The notes: a model not told the origin generated them from the sequence alone. Positions 34 through 50,288 are shown, counted from the first letter of the stretch. The stretch is 64,000 bases of DNA from Macrostomum lignano (GCA_002269645.1 NIVC01002381.1:62153-126152), one strand, 5' to 3'. Numbers and translations are program-made.

Positions 34-2930
34 TCAGAGGGCAGCCGTGGCGGGCAGCCGTGGCGGGCGGCCTCTCGGTCGCAGAGCCGGCGTCGGGACA
101 GGGTCGTCCGCGTCGATGACGGCTGGCTTCAGCCTATCCACTGACACCCGGTTGCGGCGAGTGCCCAGGTCCAGCAGGAAAGCTTTGGCGTCCCGCTCGA
201 GGACCTTGCACGGGCCGTCGTAAGGTCGCTGCAGTGGGGGGCGGTGGCCGTCGCGCCGGATGAAAACGAACTGGCAGGCGTCGAGGGCGGCGGGCCAGGC
301 GGTGGGGCGGCTGCCGTGACGGGACGTCGGCGACGGCCGGAATGCCTGGACGGCACCGCGGAGCCGGGTGAGGAACTGGTCGTGGTCGCCGGCCGGCGGG
401 CTGGGCTGCAGGCACTCGCCGGGCACGCAGAGGGGCGCACCGTAGACCAGCTCGGCTGACGAAACCGGCAGGTCCTCCTTGGGGGCCGTCCGGATGCCGA
501 GCAGCACCCAGGGCAGCTCGCTGACCCAGGCTGGTCCGGCCAGTCGCGCCATGAGGGAGGCCTTCAGCTGTCGGTGGAAACGCTCGACCAGCCCGTTCGC
601 CGTTGTCCGGTATAGCTGCATTTCGAGGAGTCGTGAGACGTTCGACCACAGCTGCGACGTGAATTGCGAGCCGCGGTCCGATGTGATGTCGCTCGGCACG
701 CCGAACCTGGCGATCCAATGGGCGATGAAGGCTGAAGCGCACGCGGCCGCGGAGGTGTCGGTCATCGGGATCGCCTCCGGCCACCGGGTGAAACGGTCCA
801 CGATGGTCAGCAGGTGCGTGAAGCCTTGCGAAGGCGGCAGCGGCCCCACCAGGTCGACGTGCACGTGGGCGAAGCGCTGGTCCGGGACGCGGATGTTGCC
901 AACTGGGGCTGACTTCCTTGTTCATGCCGGCCCACACGAACTTAGCGGCCACGAGGCGCCGCGTGCTGCGGACGGACGGGTGGGCGCGAGGCCGTGGATG
1001 GCGTCGAAGAGGGGGCGTCGGAAATTCGGCGGCACCAACGGGCGCGGCCGGCCCGTGGAGATGTCGCAGAGCAGGGTGACTCCAGGGCTGAGCTGCAGCG
1101 GCTCGAGCTGGAGGCTGGCATCGGCCTGGCTGGCCAATCGGCAACCTGCGCCATGGCCGCGAAATCCACGCCGGGGAGCAGCCGGGGCTGCACCGAAGAG
1201 ACCTTGCAGCGGGACAGCGCGTCTGCGACCGAGTTGTCCTTGCCCGCCACGTGCTGGATGTCCGTGGTGAACTCGGATACGTAGGCCAGGTGGCGCTGCT
1301 GCCAGGCGGACCACGGGTCAGACATCTTGGACATGGCGGCGACCAGCGGCTTGTGGTCTGTGAAAGCGGTGAATGCGCGGTCCTCGAGGAAATAGCGAAA
1401 GTGCCCGACCGCCAGGTACAGGGCGAGCAGCTCCCGATCGAAGGCGCTGTACTTCTGCTCGGGCGGGCAGAGCTGCCGGCTGAAGAAGGCGAGCGGCTGC
1501 CAGGCGCTGCCAACCCGCTGCTCGGGCGCCGCGCCGACTGCGGTATCGGAGGCGTCGACGGTGAGGGCGAGGGGCGCGTCTGGCCGCGGGTGCGCCAGCA
1601 TGGCGGCGGAGGCCAGCGGCCGCTTTGCCCTGTCGAAAGCGGCGGTCAGCTCGGGCGTCCACCGGACGAACTTCTCCTTGCCGGCCATGGCCGCATGGAT
1701 GGGGCGCAGCAGCTGGGCGGCGCGCGGCACGAAGCGGTGGTAGAAATTCACCATGCCGGCGAACTCCTGCAGGCCCTTGACGGTGGCTGGTGGTGCGAAC
1801 ATGGCGATGGCGTCGACTTTGGTGGGCAGCGGCACGGCTCCCTGGGCGCTGATCCAGTGGCCGAGGAAGTCGATCTCGCTGCGGCCGAACTCGCACTTGG
1901 CCGGGTTGACGATAAGGCCGTTGTCGGCCAGGCGCTGGAACAGCGTCCGCAGGTGCTCCATGTGCTGCTGCCGGCTTTGGTTAGCGACCAAGAAGTCATC
2001 GATGTAGGCGAAGACGAAGTCCAGGTCTTGGAAGACGGAGTCCACCAGCCGCTGGAAGGCCTGGGCAGCGTTCTTGAGGCCGAACGGCATTCGCAGGAAT
2101 TCGAAGAGGCCGAACGGGGTAGTGACGGCTGTCTTGGGCACGTCAACTGTAGCCACAGGCACCTGGTGGCAGCCACGGACGAGATCGATCTTGGAGAAGG
2201 CGCGCTGAGAAGTCCTGGATGTGCGGCACGGGGTAGCGGTCGGGCACCGTGGCGTCGTTGAGCCGCCTGAAATCGCCACAGGGACGCCAGCCGCCCGAGG
2301 CCTTTGGCACCATGTGCAGCGGCGAGGACCAAGTTCCGGCGAGGACCAGGAGCCGGAACTCCTCCTTGGCCACCGCCAGCTTGTCCGGCGGCAGGCGGCG
2401 AGGGCGGGCGTGGACCGGCGGGCCCTGCGTCGGGATGTGGTGCTCCACCCCGTGTCGTGGCGCAGCCCGCTGGAAACTGGGCTCGGTGAGGGCAGGGAAC
2501 TCGGCCAACAGCTGGCTGTACGGGTCCTCAGCGGTGGCTGCGGCGAGCTGCAGTCCGGGCCCCGCGCCGTCCAGCAGGTGCACGCTGGCGAGCGAGCGGG
2601 CGTCCAGGAGGCGCCGGTGCGGCAGGTCCACCAGCAGGCCGTGATGCCGCAGAAAGTCGGCGCCGGTCAGCGGGCGGGAGACCTCGGCTAGTATGAACGG
2701 CCAGGAGCAGCGCCGGATGCCGAGGTCCAACGTGAGCTGGCGGTGCCGAAGGTGCGGATGAGGCTGCCGTTGGCTGCGAAGAGCGGCGGGCCTGGCGAGT
2801 GCAGGCGGGCGTCGGAACCGGCGACGGGGAAAATGCTGACCTCGGCGCCGGTGTCGACCAGGAAACGCCAGCCTGTCTGCACATCCGGGATGAGGAGCAG
2901 GCTGCTGCTGTTGCCGGCCGTCGAGCTGTT
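34..2930 (-). pseudogene. pol: Gypsy pol (protease-RT-RNaseH-integrase) with several frameshifts
   Basis: Motifs are spread over ORFs 2688-3650, 2143-2997, 942-2279, 922-1314 and 34-864 in different frames. Confidence 0.9.
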
Positions 2931-3650
2931 CACTGACGGCCGGCCTGCCCGTTTTCCTGGAAGCTGTACGGGGGCTCGCAGTGGCGGGCCTTCGCACCGA
3001 AGCGACGGTGAAAGAAACACAGGCCGTCGTCCGGGCGGTGTTGCCGAAGCCGGCTCTGTCTGGCGCCCTTGCTGGCCGCAGAGACCGCCGGCTGGGCTTG
3101 CTGGACTGGGTCTGCCGCCGGCTGCTGGACGGAGGCCGCGACCAGCTGCGGCCGGCTGGCCCAGAGCTTGTCCACCTGCTGCGCTGCTGCCCGGGGGTCC
3201 GCGAAACTGACGGTTGTCATGGCCATGCGTACCTCCGGTGGCAGCTGTGGCGGAACAGCTCCTCGAACAGCAGGCAGGGGCGGTGTGGTTCCCCAGCAGG
3301 GCGAGCATCTCGTCCATCAGCTCGGACGGCCGCCGGTCGCCGAGGCCGGACATGCTGAGCAGGCGGCTGGCCCGCTGCTGAGGAGTCAAATCGAAAGTGC
3401 TGTTGAGGCGCTCCTTTAGCTGAGCGTACTTGTTCGCATCCGGAAGATCCTCCAGAACATCGAACAGGCGCTCTACTCTCCGCTGGTCAAGAGCTGCGAC
3501 CAGATGGGCGTACTGTATCGTCCTTGAGTGATGCCTCTCAGGGTAAACTGAGCTTCGGCCTGGATTAACCAGGCTCGAGGCAGTGAGGCTGGGCCGCCCG
3601 AAAAATGGCAGCTTCAGGGACAGCAGAGTCGGTTTGTTGGGCCATTGCAC
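2930..3650 (-). pseudogene. gag: Gypsy gag, frameshifted
   Basis: ORFs 2688-3650 and 2930-3226 hold consecutive gag segments in different frames. Confidence 0.8.
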
Positions 3651-4648: not shown

Positions 4649-23672
<19,024 letters not shown>

Positions 23673-38440: not shown

Positions 38441-40676
38441 ACTGAATAGTCTATATAGTCTATGGTCTTCACTGAGTAGTCTATAGTCTATGGTCTTCAC
38501 TGAGTAGTCTCTATATAGTCTATGTTCTTCACTGAATAGTCTATAGTCTATGGTCTTCACTGAGTAGTCTCTATATAGTCTATGTTCTTCACTGAATAGT
38601 CTATAGTCTATGGTCTTCACTGAGTAGTCTCTATATAGTCTATGTTCTTCACTGAATAGTCTATAGTCTATGGTCTTCACTGAATAGTCTCTATATAGTC
38701 TATGGTCTTCACTGAGTAGTCTATAGTCTATGGTCTAACAGTCTATACCTATTGACAAACTCGGCAAATAAAACTTTGTTTAAAAAATTCGTTGCCCACC
38801 TCCGCTTGACTAAATTCCTACATGTACATTATTTTGAGAATTGGTGTTGCCAGGGCCCATTTTATTGCCGCAGGCACTCATTAAATTTAATTTGAATTTC
38901 TGAAAACCTTTCTGCCTTTCTGCAGAGGATAAACTATTTTATCCAATGACTCAAGAAGATTGAGAAAATTCATTAAAGACATAAACAAGCCCCTCTGAAC
39001 TGCCCTGAGGCTCGATTTAAATAAATGAGACAGAAGGCGGTGGTTCTTTGTTATTAATATTTTTAAGAACGAGATAATAATGGGCCAAAGGACTGCAACC
39101 GTTTGATTGCGGGTGCTTTCTATTTATAGCTTTTTGATGATGATGGGACATTCCGGAAGAAAAAATGTTCTAGAAAGAGTAGCGCGGGAATTCGAGTTAC
39201 TGTATTTAGAATTATTTTTATCGTGGAAATTTCTAGAATGAAATGCTTACTACATGGTCAGAAAGTTTGCGAAGGTTCAGTACAAGGTCACTTTGGTACG
39301 AGTGTACCGATAATATGATCTGCTTTACGTCGAGAAACTTAATTATTTAGTAATGGATGATTAAAGTATAATAGCAATTAAAATTAAAAGTTTAAATTAA
39401 AATAAATTTTAAGAAATTAAGATTTTAAAACTAGGATTTTTCATCAAAAGAATAAGTTAATAACAGTAATAGAATAGCAACAAACACTAATTATTTTTTG
39501 TAATTTTTCCTTCATTGTACTATAGCCTTAAATAACATTTTTAAATATGAAAATCAGCACCCTCTGCGCAAATTTTTAATAACAATATTTGTTGTTAATA
39601 TGTACGCTCGTAAGTACGGTTGAATTTTTAAAAGAGCGCTTCGAATCACTTCGTACTGACCTGCTTGAGGAAATTTTCCAGGCTGAACAAATTCGATTTT
39701 TGCAGTGTCCACAGCGTTTGTTCATGCACACTATGCGGCTTGCGGCAACGATCCATTTTGTGACCAGCATCAGGTGCGATGCAGAGTTGATCCTGCCTGG
39801 CATTTGGACGGCAGTCTCGAATTCGAAGCCATTTCGAGTTTCCCTTCTTGGCCACCAACAGCCAGGACTCCTGGCACTCATGCAGACCAGCGGGCCCGAT
39901 GTCCTTTTTCAGTGTATAGTGCACCTGATCCTCCGATTCACAGCAGTTGTCGCTGCCGAGACGCCAGCAATTGCCTTGCTCGATCATCGATGTTGGAAAC
40001 CTGGCCTGCGATTGAAAAGTTTTTTCATAATGACCAGAGGTTTTGGTATAGACTGTTAGACCATAGACTATAGACTATTCAGTGAAGACCATAGACTATA
40101 GAGACTATTCAGTAAAGACCATAGACTATATAGAGACTATTCAGTAAAGACCATAGACTATAGAGACTATTCAGTGAAGACCATAGACTATAGAGACTAT
40201 TCAGTGAAGACCATAGACTATAGAGACTACTCAGTGAAGACCATAGACTATAGAGACTATTCAGTGAAGACCATAGACTATAGAGACTATTCAGTGAAGA
40301 CCATAGACTATAGAGACTATTCAGTGAAGACCATAGACTATATAGAGACTACTCAGTGAAGACCATAGACTATAGAGACTATTCAGTGAAGACCATAGAC
40401 TATAGAGACTATTCAGTGAAGACCATAGACTATAGAGACTATTCAGTGAAGACCATAGACTATAGAGACTATTCAGTGAAGACCATAGACTATAGAGACT
40501 ATTCAGTGAAGACCATAGACTATATAGAGACTATTCAGTGAAGACCATAGACTATAGAGACTATTCAGTGAAGACCATAGACTATAGAGACTATTCAGTG
40601 AAGACCATAGACTATAGAGACTATTCAGTGAAGACCATAGACTATATAGAGACTATTCAGTGAAGACCATAGACTA
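38441..40676. mobile_element. Foldback-like structure: inverted arrays of a 30-bp unit (38441-38749 and 40045-40676) around a 1.3-kb loop
   Basis: Left units (...tagtctatggtcttcactga...) are the reverse complement of right units (...tcagtgaagaccatagacta...). Inner ends agtctatggtctaacagtctatacc and ggtatagactgttagaccatagact match exactly in inverse. Confidence 0.75.
39661..40005 (-). CDS. Orphan 345-nt phase 0-0 exon with a degenerate CCCH-like module resembling ZC3H7/HELZ-type repeats
   Basis: Acceptor ttttcaatcgcag, donor CAG|gtcagt, open frame containing KWLRIRDCRP...QLC...CRKPHSVHEQTLW. The family resemblance is from memory. Confidence 0.45.
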
Positions 40677-40986: not shown

Positions 40987-42435
40987 TTAAACGGCTGTTG
41001 AATATAATTTACAATTTACGAGAAAACTCACAGTTTTATCATTTTCTGGCTTAAGATATTCCTTGATCCAATTTTTGTCCAGTTGATCCAGACCGGCTGC
41101 TCCAGATGCTTCCTCAATTTGTCTTCTTTTGTGCTGGGACACAAAACGTAAGCTCGGTAGCCGCTCAGCTGCCTCCTTCATCCGGCGAATGCCCTCGGCG
41201 GGATCTTGGCCGCTGACCAGGAGAAAGCGGCCGAACTCGAACCGGACGTGAAGCCTCGTCTTGTTGCTGTCTGCAGCAGCCTGCTCTTCGAGGGCTTCGT
41301 ATCTCTCACGAAGTTCGACCTTGTCGACAGCTTCTTCATTCTCATTCAGACCCAGCAGCCTCAGCTGGGCCCAGGTGTTTGTTAGATCGACTTTTTGCAG
41401 CAAGTATCTGGCTTTCTGGATTCTGTCCTCGCCAGCATCTTTTGTTTTGATGAAGTACAGAGCGCACTGGAAAGCGAAATCGCTCTTCAGGAACTCGCTA
41501 TCTGACAGAGTCTCGCCAGTCTTCAAAACCTTCAGCTCCTTGTTCTTGAGCCTTTTCTTGAGAATTTGGTCCTGGTCTCCTTGGATTGGCACTTTCTTCC
41601 ACTGCACCATTTTTGTCAGTCCGCGATAGACTTTGCAGCAGGTGATGTATACCTGGAGGTGCTCGCCTGCAAACTGAACCGCCTCATCTGCCAGCTGCTC
41701 AGACTTGTTGAAATGAACAGCGGAGTACGCGAGGGCCTCAGCGAACCGAGCCAGAAACATCGGGTGCTGGACTTTACATTTGTCCAGAATCCTCTTAGCC
41801 TCATCCCACAGCTCCACTCTTTCCTCTCCAATCTCAGCACTGAGGTCCGCCTGACGCCTCTGCATGGCCATCGCCTCTGCCAGACCGAAGCGCCAGTGGA
41901 AGCTCTGGACCGACTGCTCCAGATGGTGCTCCACCTCCAGCTTCAGGGCCTCCCGGAACGCCTTCGCGGCCTCCTCCAGCTGCTGCCTCCCGAAGCTGAG
42001 CAGAGTCCAGCCTTTGGCGCCCCAGACTGAGGCCCGGACCTGCGGCTTCTGCCACTCATCAGAGAGCTTCTGAAGCATCATCTGCTCTTGCTGCTCATCT
42101 GGGTGGAATTTGTTCATCAGGTGCAGCTCCGTGGCCTCGATCAGGAAGGCCACATCCATGGTTAAAGGTGAATTAGCATTCAAATCCAGCTTTGCTTCGT
42201 TAAGGTACTTCAGACACCGTGCTTCATCACCAGGTTGCTCCAGCATGTGCACGTAGACCAGACTCAGCAGGTGCAGCCCCTTTAGTCCGAGCTGGGTGTC
42301 CATCCTGCCTTGCAAGCTGCTGACGAGTCTGTCGATGCTCTCTGGGCTCTCGGCAAGTTTCGGCCTCCACTGGAAGTGACACGGAACCTCGCCCAGGCTC
42401 TTGAAAGACTCCGCTGGATTGTTGAGTTCCGCCAT
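40987..42435 (-). CDS. IFIT-like tetratricopeptide-repeat protein (482 aa, single coding exon)
   Basis: Start gccATGG at 42435. Motifs PCHFQW (IFIT CHFTW), LHLLSLVYVH, CLKYLNEA, GAKGWTLLSFG...AAKAFREALK, FGLAEA. Length matches IFIT-family proteins. A splice acceptor lies upstream at about 42536. Confidence 0.72.
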   Translation of the reverse strand: MAELNNPAESFKSLGEVPCHFQWRPKLAESPESIDRLVSSLQGRMDTQLGLKGLHLLSLVYVHMLEQPGDEARCLKYLNEAKLDLNANSPLTMDVAFLIEATELHLMNKFHPDEQQEQMMLQKLSDEWQKPQVRASVWGAKGWTLLSFGRQQLEEAAKAFREALKLEVEHHLEQSVQSFHWRFGLAEAMAMQRRQADLSAEIGEERVELWDEAKRILDKCKVQHPMFLARFAEALAYSAVHFNKSEQLADEAVQFAGEHLQVYITCCKVYRGLTKMVQWKKVPIQGDQDQILKKRLKNKELKVLKTGETLSDSEFLKSDFAFQCALYFIKTKDAGEDRIQKARYLLQKVDLTNTWAQLRLLGLNENEEAVDKVELRERYEALEEQAAADSNKTRLHVRFEFGRFLLVSGQDPAEGIRRMKEAAERLPSLRFVSQHKRRQIEEASGAAGLDQLDKNWIKEYLKPENDKTVSFLVNCKLYSTAV

Positions 42436-44420
42436 GGCGAGAACTGACTGTCTGAATGAACGGGGGGAGGGGGTAGGGTTGGGATCAGCTCTCAGGCAGC
42501 TGTCAGACCAGAGAGTCGGACTGACATCAGTGGCTCTACAAATGAAAAAAACCGTTAGACCAAGCAAGGAGAACAATTAGTTTTACAAAATTACGAGTAG
42601 TAATGTTGGGTTACTTCCTTAGTACTTAAGCAGTAACCCTGTTGTTATATATAAATGTTGTCTGTTGTCTCTTTCGATTGAAGCTAAAATAAACCTTGAT
42701 GATGTCCGCTTTGGACGAAAAGCTTTGGCACGAGCTAATTGCACAACATTTTTCCTAGCTGCTGGTTCTATTTTTGAATCTGACGCTGATCTCAGAAAAA
42801 TAATAATGGAGGTTACTAAAAAAAGTCACGTACCGGAGCAGCAGTTGACAGATTTGACCCAATGGCTCACAAGGTACAGCCTACCTGATCGATATTTTAG
42901 TTCCATATTTCTGCTTTAAATAGCTATCCAAATATATACCATATGGTTGAACCTGTTATGAGGGATTTTTAGTGAAGAAAACTAGCAATCAGCGCCCCCT
43001 GTTGGGGAGCCAACATGGTATGGAATAAAAATTATTGAACAAACTACATTTAGCTTCTGACTACTCCTCAGCCTTGATATCTCAGCAATTCCCCGACCAG
43101 CCTTGACATTACAGCAATTCTCCCCAAGGATCGCAGCATTAGCAACCTCCCCATGGCTTGACATCTTAGCAATTGATCCCCAATGAACCTTTTGTGTTTG
43201 ACATAGCTCTTCTTTTACGTTAGACATGACAAAAAGTTTTCGTTTCACTGGGGAAGGTGCAAAGTATGAAGTTAGTGCGTTTCGAGAGAGGTTGGCCCCC
43301 TGTTCCACATTTCTGTGGGACCAACAAATTTAAAGTTAAGAGACGCAGCTTTATGAGCTTCAATGACAACTCTCACAGCAGTCATATTCATATCACAGGA
43401 GCACCCACGGGTTCGCTTGTAAATTTGCAGCCACTGTTCGAAAATGAAAAGAGCAAATTGGCGAGATCACTTACCGAAATACAGATGCTGAGAATGGCTT
43501 AGCGACTTTGTAGCACGGCTGGTTTATGTGAGTTGGTTTTGCTGGCCATTAGTTTCAATTAGTTTCAGATATAATATACAGTGTATACCATGCAGTCATA
43601 CATGTACATGTACAATAGTTGGAATGGCAGACCCCCTACGCACTTGAAATCTAATTGGGGTGGGCGAGAATTTCAGATACAAATACCAGCATATTCTGTT
43701 CGCAACTGCACGCTCTGGCTGTGATCGGTACAGTACGGAGCTAAGAGGAAGTTTGGGCAAATTGAGGGGGAACTTCATTGTTTCTCAATCCTCGTCTCCC
43801 TCCTTACGTACATGCGTGACGGAGTCATATCACGGGTCTTGGGTGATTGCGAGCTAAATTCAACTGGCTCTCTCGAGGGCCCGATCACAATCTTGTTCAG
43901 TTACCACATAGTAAGTCTATACAAAAGAATCCACATTGACTGTACGTGTGGTAGCCCAGCATTAATGTTGATCGATAATTTCCGCCTTGTCCTAATGGCA
44001 ACGCCAAGCAACGGACGCTGACGAGCTCGCTCGAACAACAGCAAGTTGAGATGCCTTCAAGTTTGAGTTAGCAACGCCGCGCCGTGCTACCCACACTCAG
44101 TGCAGGTGTTCATGCTTTACCGGCGGTGACAGGTGCGCACTGTGTTTCGTCGACTGCCTGCTGGCTCGTGCTGTCACCCGAATTTGGTAGGCGGCGGAAT
44201 GGCCTTTGTTTTCGCGCTATAACGCTGCTTTTTTTAGGCTGTAGGCATTCTGGCTCGCGCTCAACGCTTTCGGGGCGAAATCGTCTCAAAAAAACCAGCA
44301 GTTTTGCCCATTTCGCAGACTCCAGGGCACATGCATGCGCAAGCGCGCCAACACTGTATGCTTGGGGGTTGACAAACCCCCTGTGACCAATTTTCCTGCA
44401 CACAAGCCCCAAATGAGCGA

Positions 44421-44493
44421 GGCCACACAAGGAATCGAACCCGGGTTCTTGGCGGGAGAGTCGGACTCGGTTCACCACTGAGCTGATCCGCCC
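44421..44493 (-). pseudogene. tRNA-derived element (SINE head or pseudo-tRNA)
   Basis: Box A CAGCTCAGTGG and box B GGTTCGATTCC at tRNA spacing, but the acceptor, anticodon and T stems do not pair. Confidence 0.55.
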
Positions 44494-45407
44494 CGTCCGT
44501 AACTGTACGAGTATGGAGGGCGGGGATCCTTGACAGACGGTTAAAGGATGTCGATATTTCACCAAAAACTATGAGCACTGGTTTTTAAATCTAAGGAATT
44601 CAAGCCTGGACATCCAGTCCAAGGAAGCAGCTTCTTAAAGATGTACTTTAGCAGAACAGACAGCTGCCCCTGAACTAGAATGAGCTGCCTCCAGATCTTC
44701 TTCTACGAGCTAGAAGCTGAAGCCGCAACAATAGGCTAGCTTGTGTTCGTGAATTTTGTGTTTCACCTTTGGGATAGTTCTACAGGTGCAACCGAAGGAA
44801 CTCGAGCTGTCCGGCTTTGACTTGCGTCCGAGCAGCGTACATACCATACTACTTTGTAATAAACCAAACCAATTGAACTAAAAATACAATTGACTGCTGG
44901 TCTTATAGAAATGTCATTACCTGATTATATATTTTTTTAAATCAAACCAAATCAACTCGCCTTATCAAAAACATTGAATGTTGAAGTCTGTAACAGTAGA
45001 AAGCGTGAAAAAACTGTATTAAAATACAGCCTGATATTTGGTAAATGAGTATGAATATAGATGGATATAGTGCTGCATAATTACTGGTTCTACTCAGAAG
45101 CGCTAAGCTGGCTCTAAGAGCGAATGAATAAGACACTAAAAATAGCATCAGGCAGAGTAGGCACACTGGAGTTGCAGCATTCATTTCTCATTAGTATATA
45201 GAAAAAGGGAAGCATAAATCAAATTGGAAACATGTAGAAGAAAATTTGTGCTAAAATTTACACTCAAAATATTTTTATTTTATAACCAATGCTCAAGCTA
45301 CACTACTCGGGCAAGCAAGTCAGTAGCATCTAACGAGTGCATTTGCCGGGCGGTGGGCAACGCGGGTGAAGCGGAGAACATTTTGGACAGCAATAATGTC
45401 AGGCAGG

Positions 45408-50069: not shown

Positions 50070-50288
50070 GGCCAGGGGGTTGTAGCCTAGAGGTTAGAAA
50101 GTTGGACTCACGACTAAAACTGAAAAGTTGGGGTTCAATTCCCAATCCCACTGGAACAATATGTGTCCATGAGCAAGACACTTAATTCTGCATTGCTTCA
50201 GTTCACCCAGCTGTAAAATGGGTGCCAGCATTAGCTAGGGTAATTGAGGGTGTGTGTGACAACCCCCAAGTCCTTGGACTGAACAGCT
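50070..50288 (+). mobile_element. tRNA-derived SINE (older copy)
   Basis: Degenerate A/B boxes followed by gtgtccatgagcaagacacttaattct...cacccagctgtaaaatggg; homologous to 59767-59960. Confidence 0.7.

Follow-up and report, generated by a model that had tools for sequence, protein, structure and literature searches.

The 64-kb stretch of DNA presented above, hereafter referred to as the window, consists of eukaryotic DNA with a very high content of minisatellites, and carries on its minus strand an open reading frame (ORF) whose product resembles the vertebrate IFITs, interferon-induced proteins that carry tetratricopeptide repeats. An initial annotation had read this ORF as encoding an interferon-independent, IFIT-like sensor of RNA. 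On the basis of its sequence and of its predicted fold, we consider it likely that it is an intact, one-exon gene for a 482-residue, all-helical protein of the tetratricopeptide repeat (TPR) type, distantly homologous to IFITs and with an altered ligand pocket. The features discussed below are listed in Table 1.

Gene model

A single minus-strand frame is open over 40987..42576, i.e. 529 codons when counted from a TTG, and its first ATG, at 42435, opens the 482-residue product. The intact ORF is exactly the one reported by the initial annotation. Because the relatives of the protein start at the position of this ATG, the in-frame extension located upstream of it is probably 5' untranslated region or intron and not coding sequence. 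Exact look-ups found neither the 482-residue nor the 529-residue product on record. The chance of a frame of about 500 codons in DNA of ~45 % GC is far too low, and significant homologues also exist; the GC content at third codon positions (GC3) of the ORF is 0.66. In the whole window, no second non-repetitive, non-transposon ORF comes near it in length.

The whole ORF lies in one exon, as had been proposed, and the genes of the Macrostomum lignano relatives are likewise single-exon. The ATG is found inside the large exon, 16 nt past a pyrimidine-rich tract ending in AG, a candidate cis- or trans-splice acceptor; the gene of the relative P0002 has an acceptor-like TTTTTCAG 27 nt 5' of its ATG. 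The upstream acceptor of the initial annotation is present as sequence and stays a candidate. Additionally, an TTTATATATAA stretch ~210 nt 5' of the ATG could be a TATA-like promoter element, as an alternative to an upstream exon. At the other end of the gene, the exact C-terminus of the protein is uncertain, because a GTGAGT donor-like hexamer precedes the stop by 14 codons and the last 18 residues (465-482) are modelled as disordered, with a predicted local distance difference test score (pLDDT) below 50. Splicing at this hexamer, if used, would give a different C-terminus.

Table 1 Location of the IFIT-like gene, of its parts and of the other features of the window
Feature	Position	Strand	Remarks
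IFIT-like protein, complete coding sequence	40987..42435	-	482 codons and TAA stop; uninterrupted 1449 nt
N-terminal half, residues 13-255	41671..42399	-	Significant similarity to relatives and vertebrate IFITs (phmmer, tblastn, hhalign)
C-terminal helical-repeat half, residues 256-464	41044..41670	-	IFIT-like through predicted fold only
CHFQW motif, residues 19-23	42367..42381	-	Counterpart of the IFIT N-terminal CHFTW
KGWTLLSFG...AFREAL, residues 141-164	41944..42015	-	Counterpart of the IFIT helices bearing W146/K150 (HMMER, profile, hhalign, MAFFT)
GTGAGT donor-like hexamer	41026..41031	-	14 codons ahead of the stop
In-frame upstream extension without ATG	42436..42576	-	Mechanical TTG start (ORF listing); probably not coding
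Pyrimidine-rich tract (~30 nt) ending in AG	42452..42484	-	Candidate splice acceptor, from sequence reading
TTTATATATAA stretch	42645-42655	-	Possibly TATA-like
Retrotransposon-type gag/pol	34-3650	-	DUF7041 gag-like ORF, reverse transcriptase, RNase H, integrase core; GC 63-70 %
Clathrin heavy-chain gene	~12700-18330	+	Exons at least 12.7-18.3 kb, may extend further; propeller, linker and clathrin-repeat exons
Tandem segmental duplication	20669-~29100 and 29469-~38100		Unit ~9.0 kb, 98.4 % identity; spans 20.7-38.1 kb
28-30-bp minisatellite, two arrays in opposite orientation	38441-38736 and 40058-40676		Flank ~1.3 kb (38.7-40.06 kb)
tRNA-derived SINE copy	44380-44500	-	Recognised by eye only
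tRNA-derived SINE copy	50130-50287	+	89 % identical to an M. lignano element
tRNA-derived SINE copy	59788-59952	+	83 % identical to an M. lignano element

Similarity to vertebrate IFITs

In order to identify homologues, an exhaustive phmmer (HMMER) search was run against 1.84 billion cluster representatives at a threshold of E<=1e-3, and all the relatives used in this study come from it. Twenty matches were obtained, the best at E=9e-14, spanning approximately residues 13-255 at ~28 % identity. According to cluster look-ups, every named match is either an M. lignano hypothetical protein or a vertebrate protein of the IFIT type, i.e. IFIT1-like or IFIT5-like proteins from Chanos, Phyllobates, Hypanus and Dendropsophus, and an uncharacterised protein from Electrophorus. 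The vertebrate IFIT1/5-like matches range from E=1.2e-7 to 4.5e-5. The other matches are encoded on long ENA contigs (37-38 % GC) that come from two or more assemblies. The ten best matches all belong to an invertebrate IFIT-like clade, described below, and no generic TPR family was found at the threshold.

To compare this clade with solved structures, an invertebrate-only profile of 18 sequences was built, in which the window protein was joined by 17 invertebrate relatives and from which vertebrate IFITs were excluded. Against PDB, it ranked IFIT5 first (E=7e-8) and IFIT1 lower (E=2.6e-5), in register from the helix bearing the C-H-F-x-W motif. In word-index protein searches, the same alignment of 18 sequences recovered only one of its own members, and the single sequence nothing. 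Using hhalign, comparison with five vertebrate IFIT-like proteins gave a probability of 98.9 % and E=3.4e-17 over 393 columns. This comparison set is genuine, since one of the vertebrate matches that it includes, P0014, has an E-value of 7e-51 against human IFIT1.

The two motifs singled out by the initial annotation, CHFQW and KGWTLLSFG...AFREAL, are located where it had placed them. The C, H, F and W of the first are the same in IFIT1, IFIT5 and the fish and frog IFITs, are invariant across the five vertebrate sequences compared, and are found in 16-18 of the 18 invertebrate relatives (MAFFT). A further likeness, the 'GRF' common to FEFGRF in the window protein, to the M. lignano protein P0004 and to HYGRF in IFIT1/5, was dropped, as MAFFT did not align its occurrences together.

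The fold was predicted with AlphaFold2 from the invertebrate-only alignment, with no templates and no vertebrate IFIT. The resulting model has a mean pLDDT of 79.9, a predicted template-modelling (TM) score of 0.75 and ~22 helices arranged in hairpins; most of residues 13-255 are at pLDDT 85-95. A model computed from the single sequence (pLDDT 44) was discarded as useless. When the alignment-based model was searched against PDB with Foldseek, ranks 1 to 13 were all occupied by IFIT5 and IFIT1 chains, twelve of them full-length (503-534 columns, TM 0.56-0.67, E ~1e-6 to 2e-5), and the next matches, i.e. BBSome, OGT, consensus TPR designs (CTPR), LGN and APC/C, had a query TM-score of at most 0.42. 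We are confident, as a prediction, of an all-helical TPR clamp with the IFIT arrangement of subdomains. Within the C-terminal half the register differs between alignments: one is colinear with an offset of ~+11, and another would place an additional helical hairpin at 260-316.

By sequence comparison and modelled fold, the window protein is a very distant homologue of the vertebrate IFITs, and specifically so rather than a generic TPR protein. This conclusion agrees with the initial annotation, the phmmer, profile and hhalign searches and the predicted fold all pointing in the same direction; that it is a true IFIT homologue we regard as very probable. Identity to vertebrate IFITs is 19-28 %, including ~19-22 % to human IFIT5 and IFIT1 and 25 % to a fish IFIT.

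An invertebrate clade of IFIT-like proteins

Its sequence places the window protein in a small IFIT-like clade otherwise known from M. lignano hypothetical proteins and from eukaryote-type ENA contigs. The M. lignano members are PAA92423.1/PAA80017.1 (P0004, P0021) and PAA70660.1/PAA70671.1 (P0005, P0024), whose sequences are public and annotated merely as 'hypothetical'; the ENA proteins include P0001-P0003, P0006-P0008, P0010 and P0013, among others. This placement was made because, of the 45 columns with a conservation of 70 % or more among the relatives, the window protein fits 30, and these include clade-specific residues (W128, R194, W210 and F227) that are absent from vertebrate IFITs. 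The closest relatives have phmmer E-values of 9e-14 to 1e-9, identity to clade members is 21-27 % over the N-terminal half (25 % to the M. lignano proteins), and in an unbootstrapped neighbor-joining tree the window protein forms a deep branch. GC3 is 0.55-0.63 in the M. lignano copies.

Many members of the clade are 750-1091 residues long and are extended at their C-terminus by several hundred residues. The long members include P0002, P0003, P0004, P0019, P0024 and P0027 (loci L002-L006), and their C-terminal region is conserved. It has no match in Pfam, PDB or PADLOC, and tblastn detected no exon for it in the 64-kb window. One possible role for this extension is that of an effector joined to the IFIT-like clamp.

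The P0004 cluster also contains P0022, with Pfam hits to TUDOR and, faintly, to SNase, and a 4203-residue 'AMP deaminase' fusion. At the locus concerned (L005 10001-13596, M. lignano NIVC01000264.1), an AMP deaminase gene is the neighbour. Both proteins look like gene-model fusions around a single IFIT-like locus.

Evidence against an IFIT assignment and the generic TPR alternative

Several observations weigh against reading the gene as an IFIT homologue, in addition to the pocket residues considered in the next section. Scans of the protein with Pfam, NCBIfam and PADLOC gave nothing above threshold. Among solved structures, the protein taken singly had IFIT5 as its sole match, at no better than E=0.23 (HMMER). 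Designed consensus TPR proteins scored nearly equal to IFIT5 in the profile search against PDB. A single IFIT-like copy was found in the 64-kb window, with no tandem cluster of paralogues (tblastn, 24 relatives of 28 query sequences), and no interferon-stimulated response element (ISRE) of the type GAAANNGAAAS occurs within 18 kb of the gene.

A rival reading is that of an ordinary TPR protein, with a likeness to IFITs that arose by convergence or follows from the degeneracy of the TPR motif. TPR motifs align easily with one another. Earlier invertebrate 'IFIT-like' BLAST hits turned out to be FKBP4-like TPR proteins (PMC3688568). The score of the consensus designs counts in the same direction, though these designs match profile positions 445-503, i.e. 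a canonical TPR of the long relatives that is mostly a gap in the window protein. Such an origin is contradicted by the absence of generic TPR families from the exhaustive search at E<=1e-3, by a colinear match that begins at the non-TPR CHFxW helix, and by Foldseek TM-scores of ~0.6 for IFIT1/5 compared with those of other TPR proteins given above. The best match in the profile search is IFIT5, and the best in Foldseek are IFIT5 and IFIT1, so that unrelated TPR families as best matches, the first of the outcomes named beforehand as refuting the IFIT reading, were not obtained. We therefore consider the convergent origin largely refuted and very improbable. Generic TPR proteins such as the CTPR designs, the TPR domain of OGT, LGN and the APC/C subunits have the helical hairpin repeats in common with the window protein, in which weak Pfam TPR_2/TPR_16 signals are present, but are devoid of the CHFxW N-terminal helix.

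The ISRE is a regulatory trait of vertebrate IFIT genes and not a structural one. Interferon genes are reported only from jawed vertebrates (Liu et al. 2013, PMC3688568). Given this reported distribution and the lack of an ISRE within 18 kb, control of the gene by interferon is not expected.

RNA-binding residues and possible ligand

The contact residues of IFIT5 and the effects of their mutation have been tabulated, with K150, R253 and R186 as the three strongest electrostatic contributors (PMC9677429); T37/K150 and the IFIT1 residues R38/K151 have been described elsewhere (PMC3950709). By microscale thermophoresis, the K150M substitution alone weakens binding by IFIT5 ~15-fold, and more in an earlier gel-shift assay, and binding by the Q41E/K150M/R253M triple mutant is ~150-fold weaker (PMC9677429).

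IFIT5 positions were mapped onto the window protein using HMMER, hhalign and MAFFT. K150 corresponds to S147 by all three methods (among 18 relatives, C in nine, R in three, S in three, N in two and W in one) and R186 to M191 by hhalign and MAFFT (R in 14 of the 18, K in three, E in one). R253 falls on I264 in the colinear alignment or on F321 in the alternative register (hhalign/MAFFT), and is non-basic both ways; in the colinear alignment, R is present in six and K in two of the 18 relatives. In the colinear alignment the tyrosines fare no better: Y156 is replaced by L153 (Y in 9/18 relatives), Y250 by Q261 and Y254 by T265. In the same alignment the cap-stacking W146 (W147 in IFIT1) is kept as W143, tryptophan being present at this position in only two of 18 relatives. 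In one alignment, R44, Q48 and R271 occupy the positions of IFIT1 R38, IFIT1 Q41/42 and IFIT5 R260, in a part of that alignment which is unstable; alignments disagree for helix 2 and the C-terminal half. From these comparisons, the triphosphate pocket that defines IFIT1 and IFIT5 is absent from this copy, and the loss of RNA-binding residues, named beforehand as an outcome that would undermine the IFIT reading, is largely what we find here, W143 being retained.

The proposal of a sensor of 5'-triphosphate or cap-0 RNA is not supported by this mapping. A working sensor of the IFIT1/IFIT5 type would clamp such RNA ends in a basic tunnel, independently of interferon. Its fold and N-terminal motifs match IFIT1 and IFIT5, W143 stands in the cap-stacking position, R44, Q48 and R271 can be aligned with contact residues, and a basic residue occupies the R186 position in 17 of 18 relatives. 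However, with S, M and I/F in place of K150, R186 and R253, recognition of this type is improbable; the much weaker binding of IFIT5 K150M and of the triple mutant (PMC9677429), the poor conservation of K150 in the clade and the acidic character of the protein over its N-terminal two thirds are also against it. We consider it unlikely that the protein senses triphosphate or cap-0 ends, and just as unlikely that a sensor of the IFIT1/IFIT5 type as a whole is the right description.

Loss of the triphosphate-contact residues would suit a protein of the IFIT fold with other proteins as its ligands, serving as adaptor or scaffold in the manner of IFIT3, perhaps with no antiviral role. TPR clamps are commonly peptide binders. 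The long relatives carry the extra C-terminal region, and the short copy studied here could be their partner or regulator. There is, against this, no direct sign of a protein ligand, and the basic R186 position of the clade together with R194 suggests an anionic ligand for the family; a role of this kind strikes us as rather doubtful, though less so than the sensor. Abbas and colleagues (2013) are said to have described IFIT2 and IFIT3 as lacking the full triphosphate pocket of IFIT1/5 and acting partly as partners or adaptors. Human IFIT2 and IFIT3 (PDB 4g1t, 9mk9) may thus be, in function, plausible analogues of a copy devoid of the pocket residues; they are not among the top Foldseek matches of the window protein, and neither domain-swapped dimers nor the C-terminal motif of the IFIT1-IFIT3 interaction is indicated for it, no residue-by-residue comparison having been made.

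Returning to the distant IFIT homologue with an altered pocket, the protein would fold into an IFIT-type clamp made of three helical-repeat subdomains and would hold its ligand in the central channel between them. Since R194 and a basic character at the R186 position are retained in the clade, the likeliest ligand would be an anionic polymer, for instance single-stranded RNA; that RNA is indeed the ligand has, in our view, somewhat less than an even chance. The protein would act without interferon. This copy, being without the equivalents of K150, R186 and R253, would bind its ligand by other residues or would serve as an adaptor, like IFIT2/IFIT3.

Genomic setting and host

The clathrin heavy-chain gene has a GC3 of ~0.9, with minisatellites and (GTCT)n runs in its introns. 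A 168-residue segment of its product aligns without gaps to residues 973-1140 of mammalian clathrin. No protein returned is more than 76 % identical to this segment, short fragments being the best, with 72 % for Tetraodon and 67 % for Mytilus; neither a full-length clathrin nor one from M. lignano was among the matches listed for it. The clathrin heavy chains of vertebrates are far closer to one another than 76 %. Because of this difference, the sequence indicates that the host of the window is not a vertebrate. The invertebrate setting suspected from the outset is thus upheld by the clathrin segment, and the only named invertebrate relatives of the IFIT-like protein come from a flatworm.

The window was also compared with ~88 kb of M. 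lignano DNA (four loci, L002 and L006 being nearly identical copies of a single locus), and a single family of short interspersed elements (SINEs) was found in common. With an element in loci L002/L006, the copy at 50130 shares 89 % and the copy at 59788 shares 83 % identity, and the identity extends beyond the tRNA-like head. This SINE is the main pointer to a macrostomid flatworm as the probable host, which the similar GC3 of the M. lignano copies of the gene would also fit.

These data bear on the origin of the gene, which might alternatively be a vertebrate IFIT gene acquired by contamination or recent horizontal transfer. The known distribution of the clade is patchy, and the window protein is about equally near to a fish IFIT and to the M. 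lignano proteins (25 % each). Nevertheless, its identity to vertebrate IFITs is far too low for a recent transfer, the same contig bears the non-vertebrate clathrin gene and the SINE common with M. lignano, and the clade-specific residues are not those of vertebrate IFITs. A vertebrate source is accordingly the least credible of the explanations considered, and we regard it as extremely improbable.

As regards the rest of the window, the pol region of the retrotransposon-type element is broken up among three or more ORFs that lie in different frames; the frame changes at least twice, one change falling within the reverse transcriptase domain, and the element is probably a defective copy. Its reverse transcriptase shares only 27-29 % identity with its counterparts on the ENA contigs, too little to be informative. 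The tandem segmental duplication holds minisatellite arrays with units of 21, 32, 43 and 13 bp and four of the six ISRE-like GAAAACGAAAG sites of the window. The second array of the 28-30-bp minisatellite starts ~310 bp 3' of the IFIT-like stop codon. No match to Rfam or ARAGORN models was found in the window.

Comparison with known IFITs and evolutionary meaning

Human IFIT5 and IFIT1 (PDB 3zgq/4hoq-4hot; 5udi-5udl, 5w5h/i, 6c6k) resemble the window protein in belonging to the same 482-residue length class, in their helical TPR clamp, in the C-H-F-x-W motif and the KGW..L..FG....A..F..AL helices, and in having nearly the whole ORF in one exon. They differ in that their start codon lies in a tiny first exon, whereas that of the window gene is inside the large exon. 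The low identity, the non-basic equivalents of K150, R186 and R253 and the lack of an ISRE near the gene further separate the window protein from them, as does its host, which belongs to a group without reported interferon, unlike those of IFIT1 and IFIT5. With the M. lignano and ENA relatives, the window protein has clade-specific residues in common, and with the M. lignano genes a similar GC3 and a single exon; in contrast to it, these relatives often carry the C-terminal extension and mostly have R at the R186 position, where the window protein has M. What appears to be new, from these sequences, is an IFIT-like clade of invertebrates, distinguished by its pocket and, for many of its members, by a supplementary C-terminal region.

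A survey of invertebrate genomes had concluded that IFITs arose with interferon in jawed vertebrates, and had judged the invertebrate and cyclostome candidates to be FKBP4-like TPR proteins (Liu et al. 2013, PMC3688568). In the literature searched, we found no paper linking IFIT to flatworms or other protostomes. Mx is an interferon-stimulated effector that predates interferon (PMC11789081). A true protostome homologue would add IFIT to the interferon-stimulated effectors that are older than interferon. Viperin and cGAS-STING likewise predate it.

Taken together, our analysis suggests that the IFIT family is older than interferon. On a broader and more speculative scenario, to which we give a minor share of belief, IFIT was present in an early bilaterian or anciently exchanged, and would survive in flatworms as an expanded, interferon-independent clade of nucleic-acid-binding defence proteins, some of them fused to a C-terminal effector region. 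If so, the 482-residue gene described here would be the member of this clade nearest to the vertebrate IFITs in size and layout. Finally, a true protostome homologue would provide an outgroup for understanding how the 5'-end RNA pocket of IFIT1 and IFIT5 was built.

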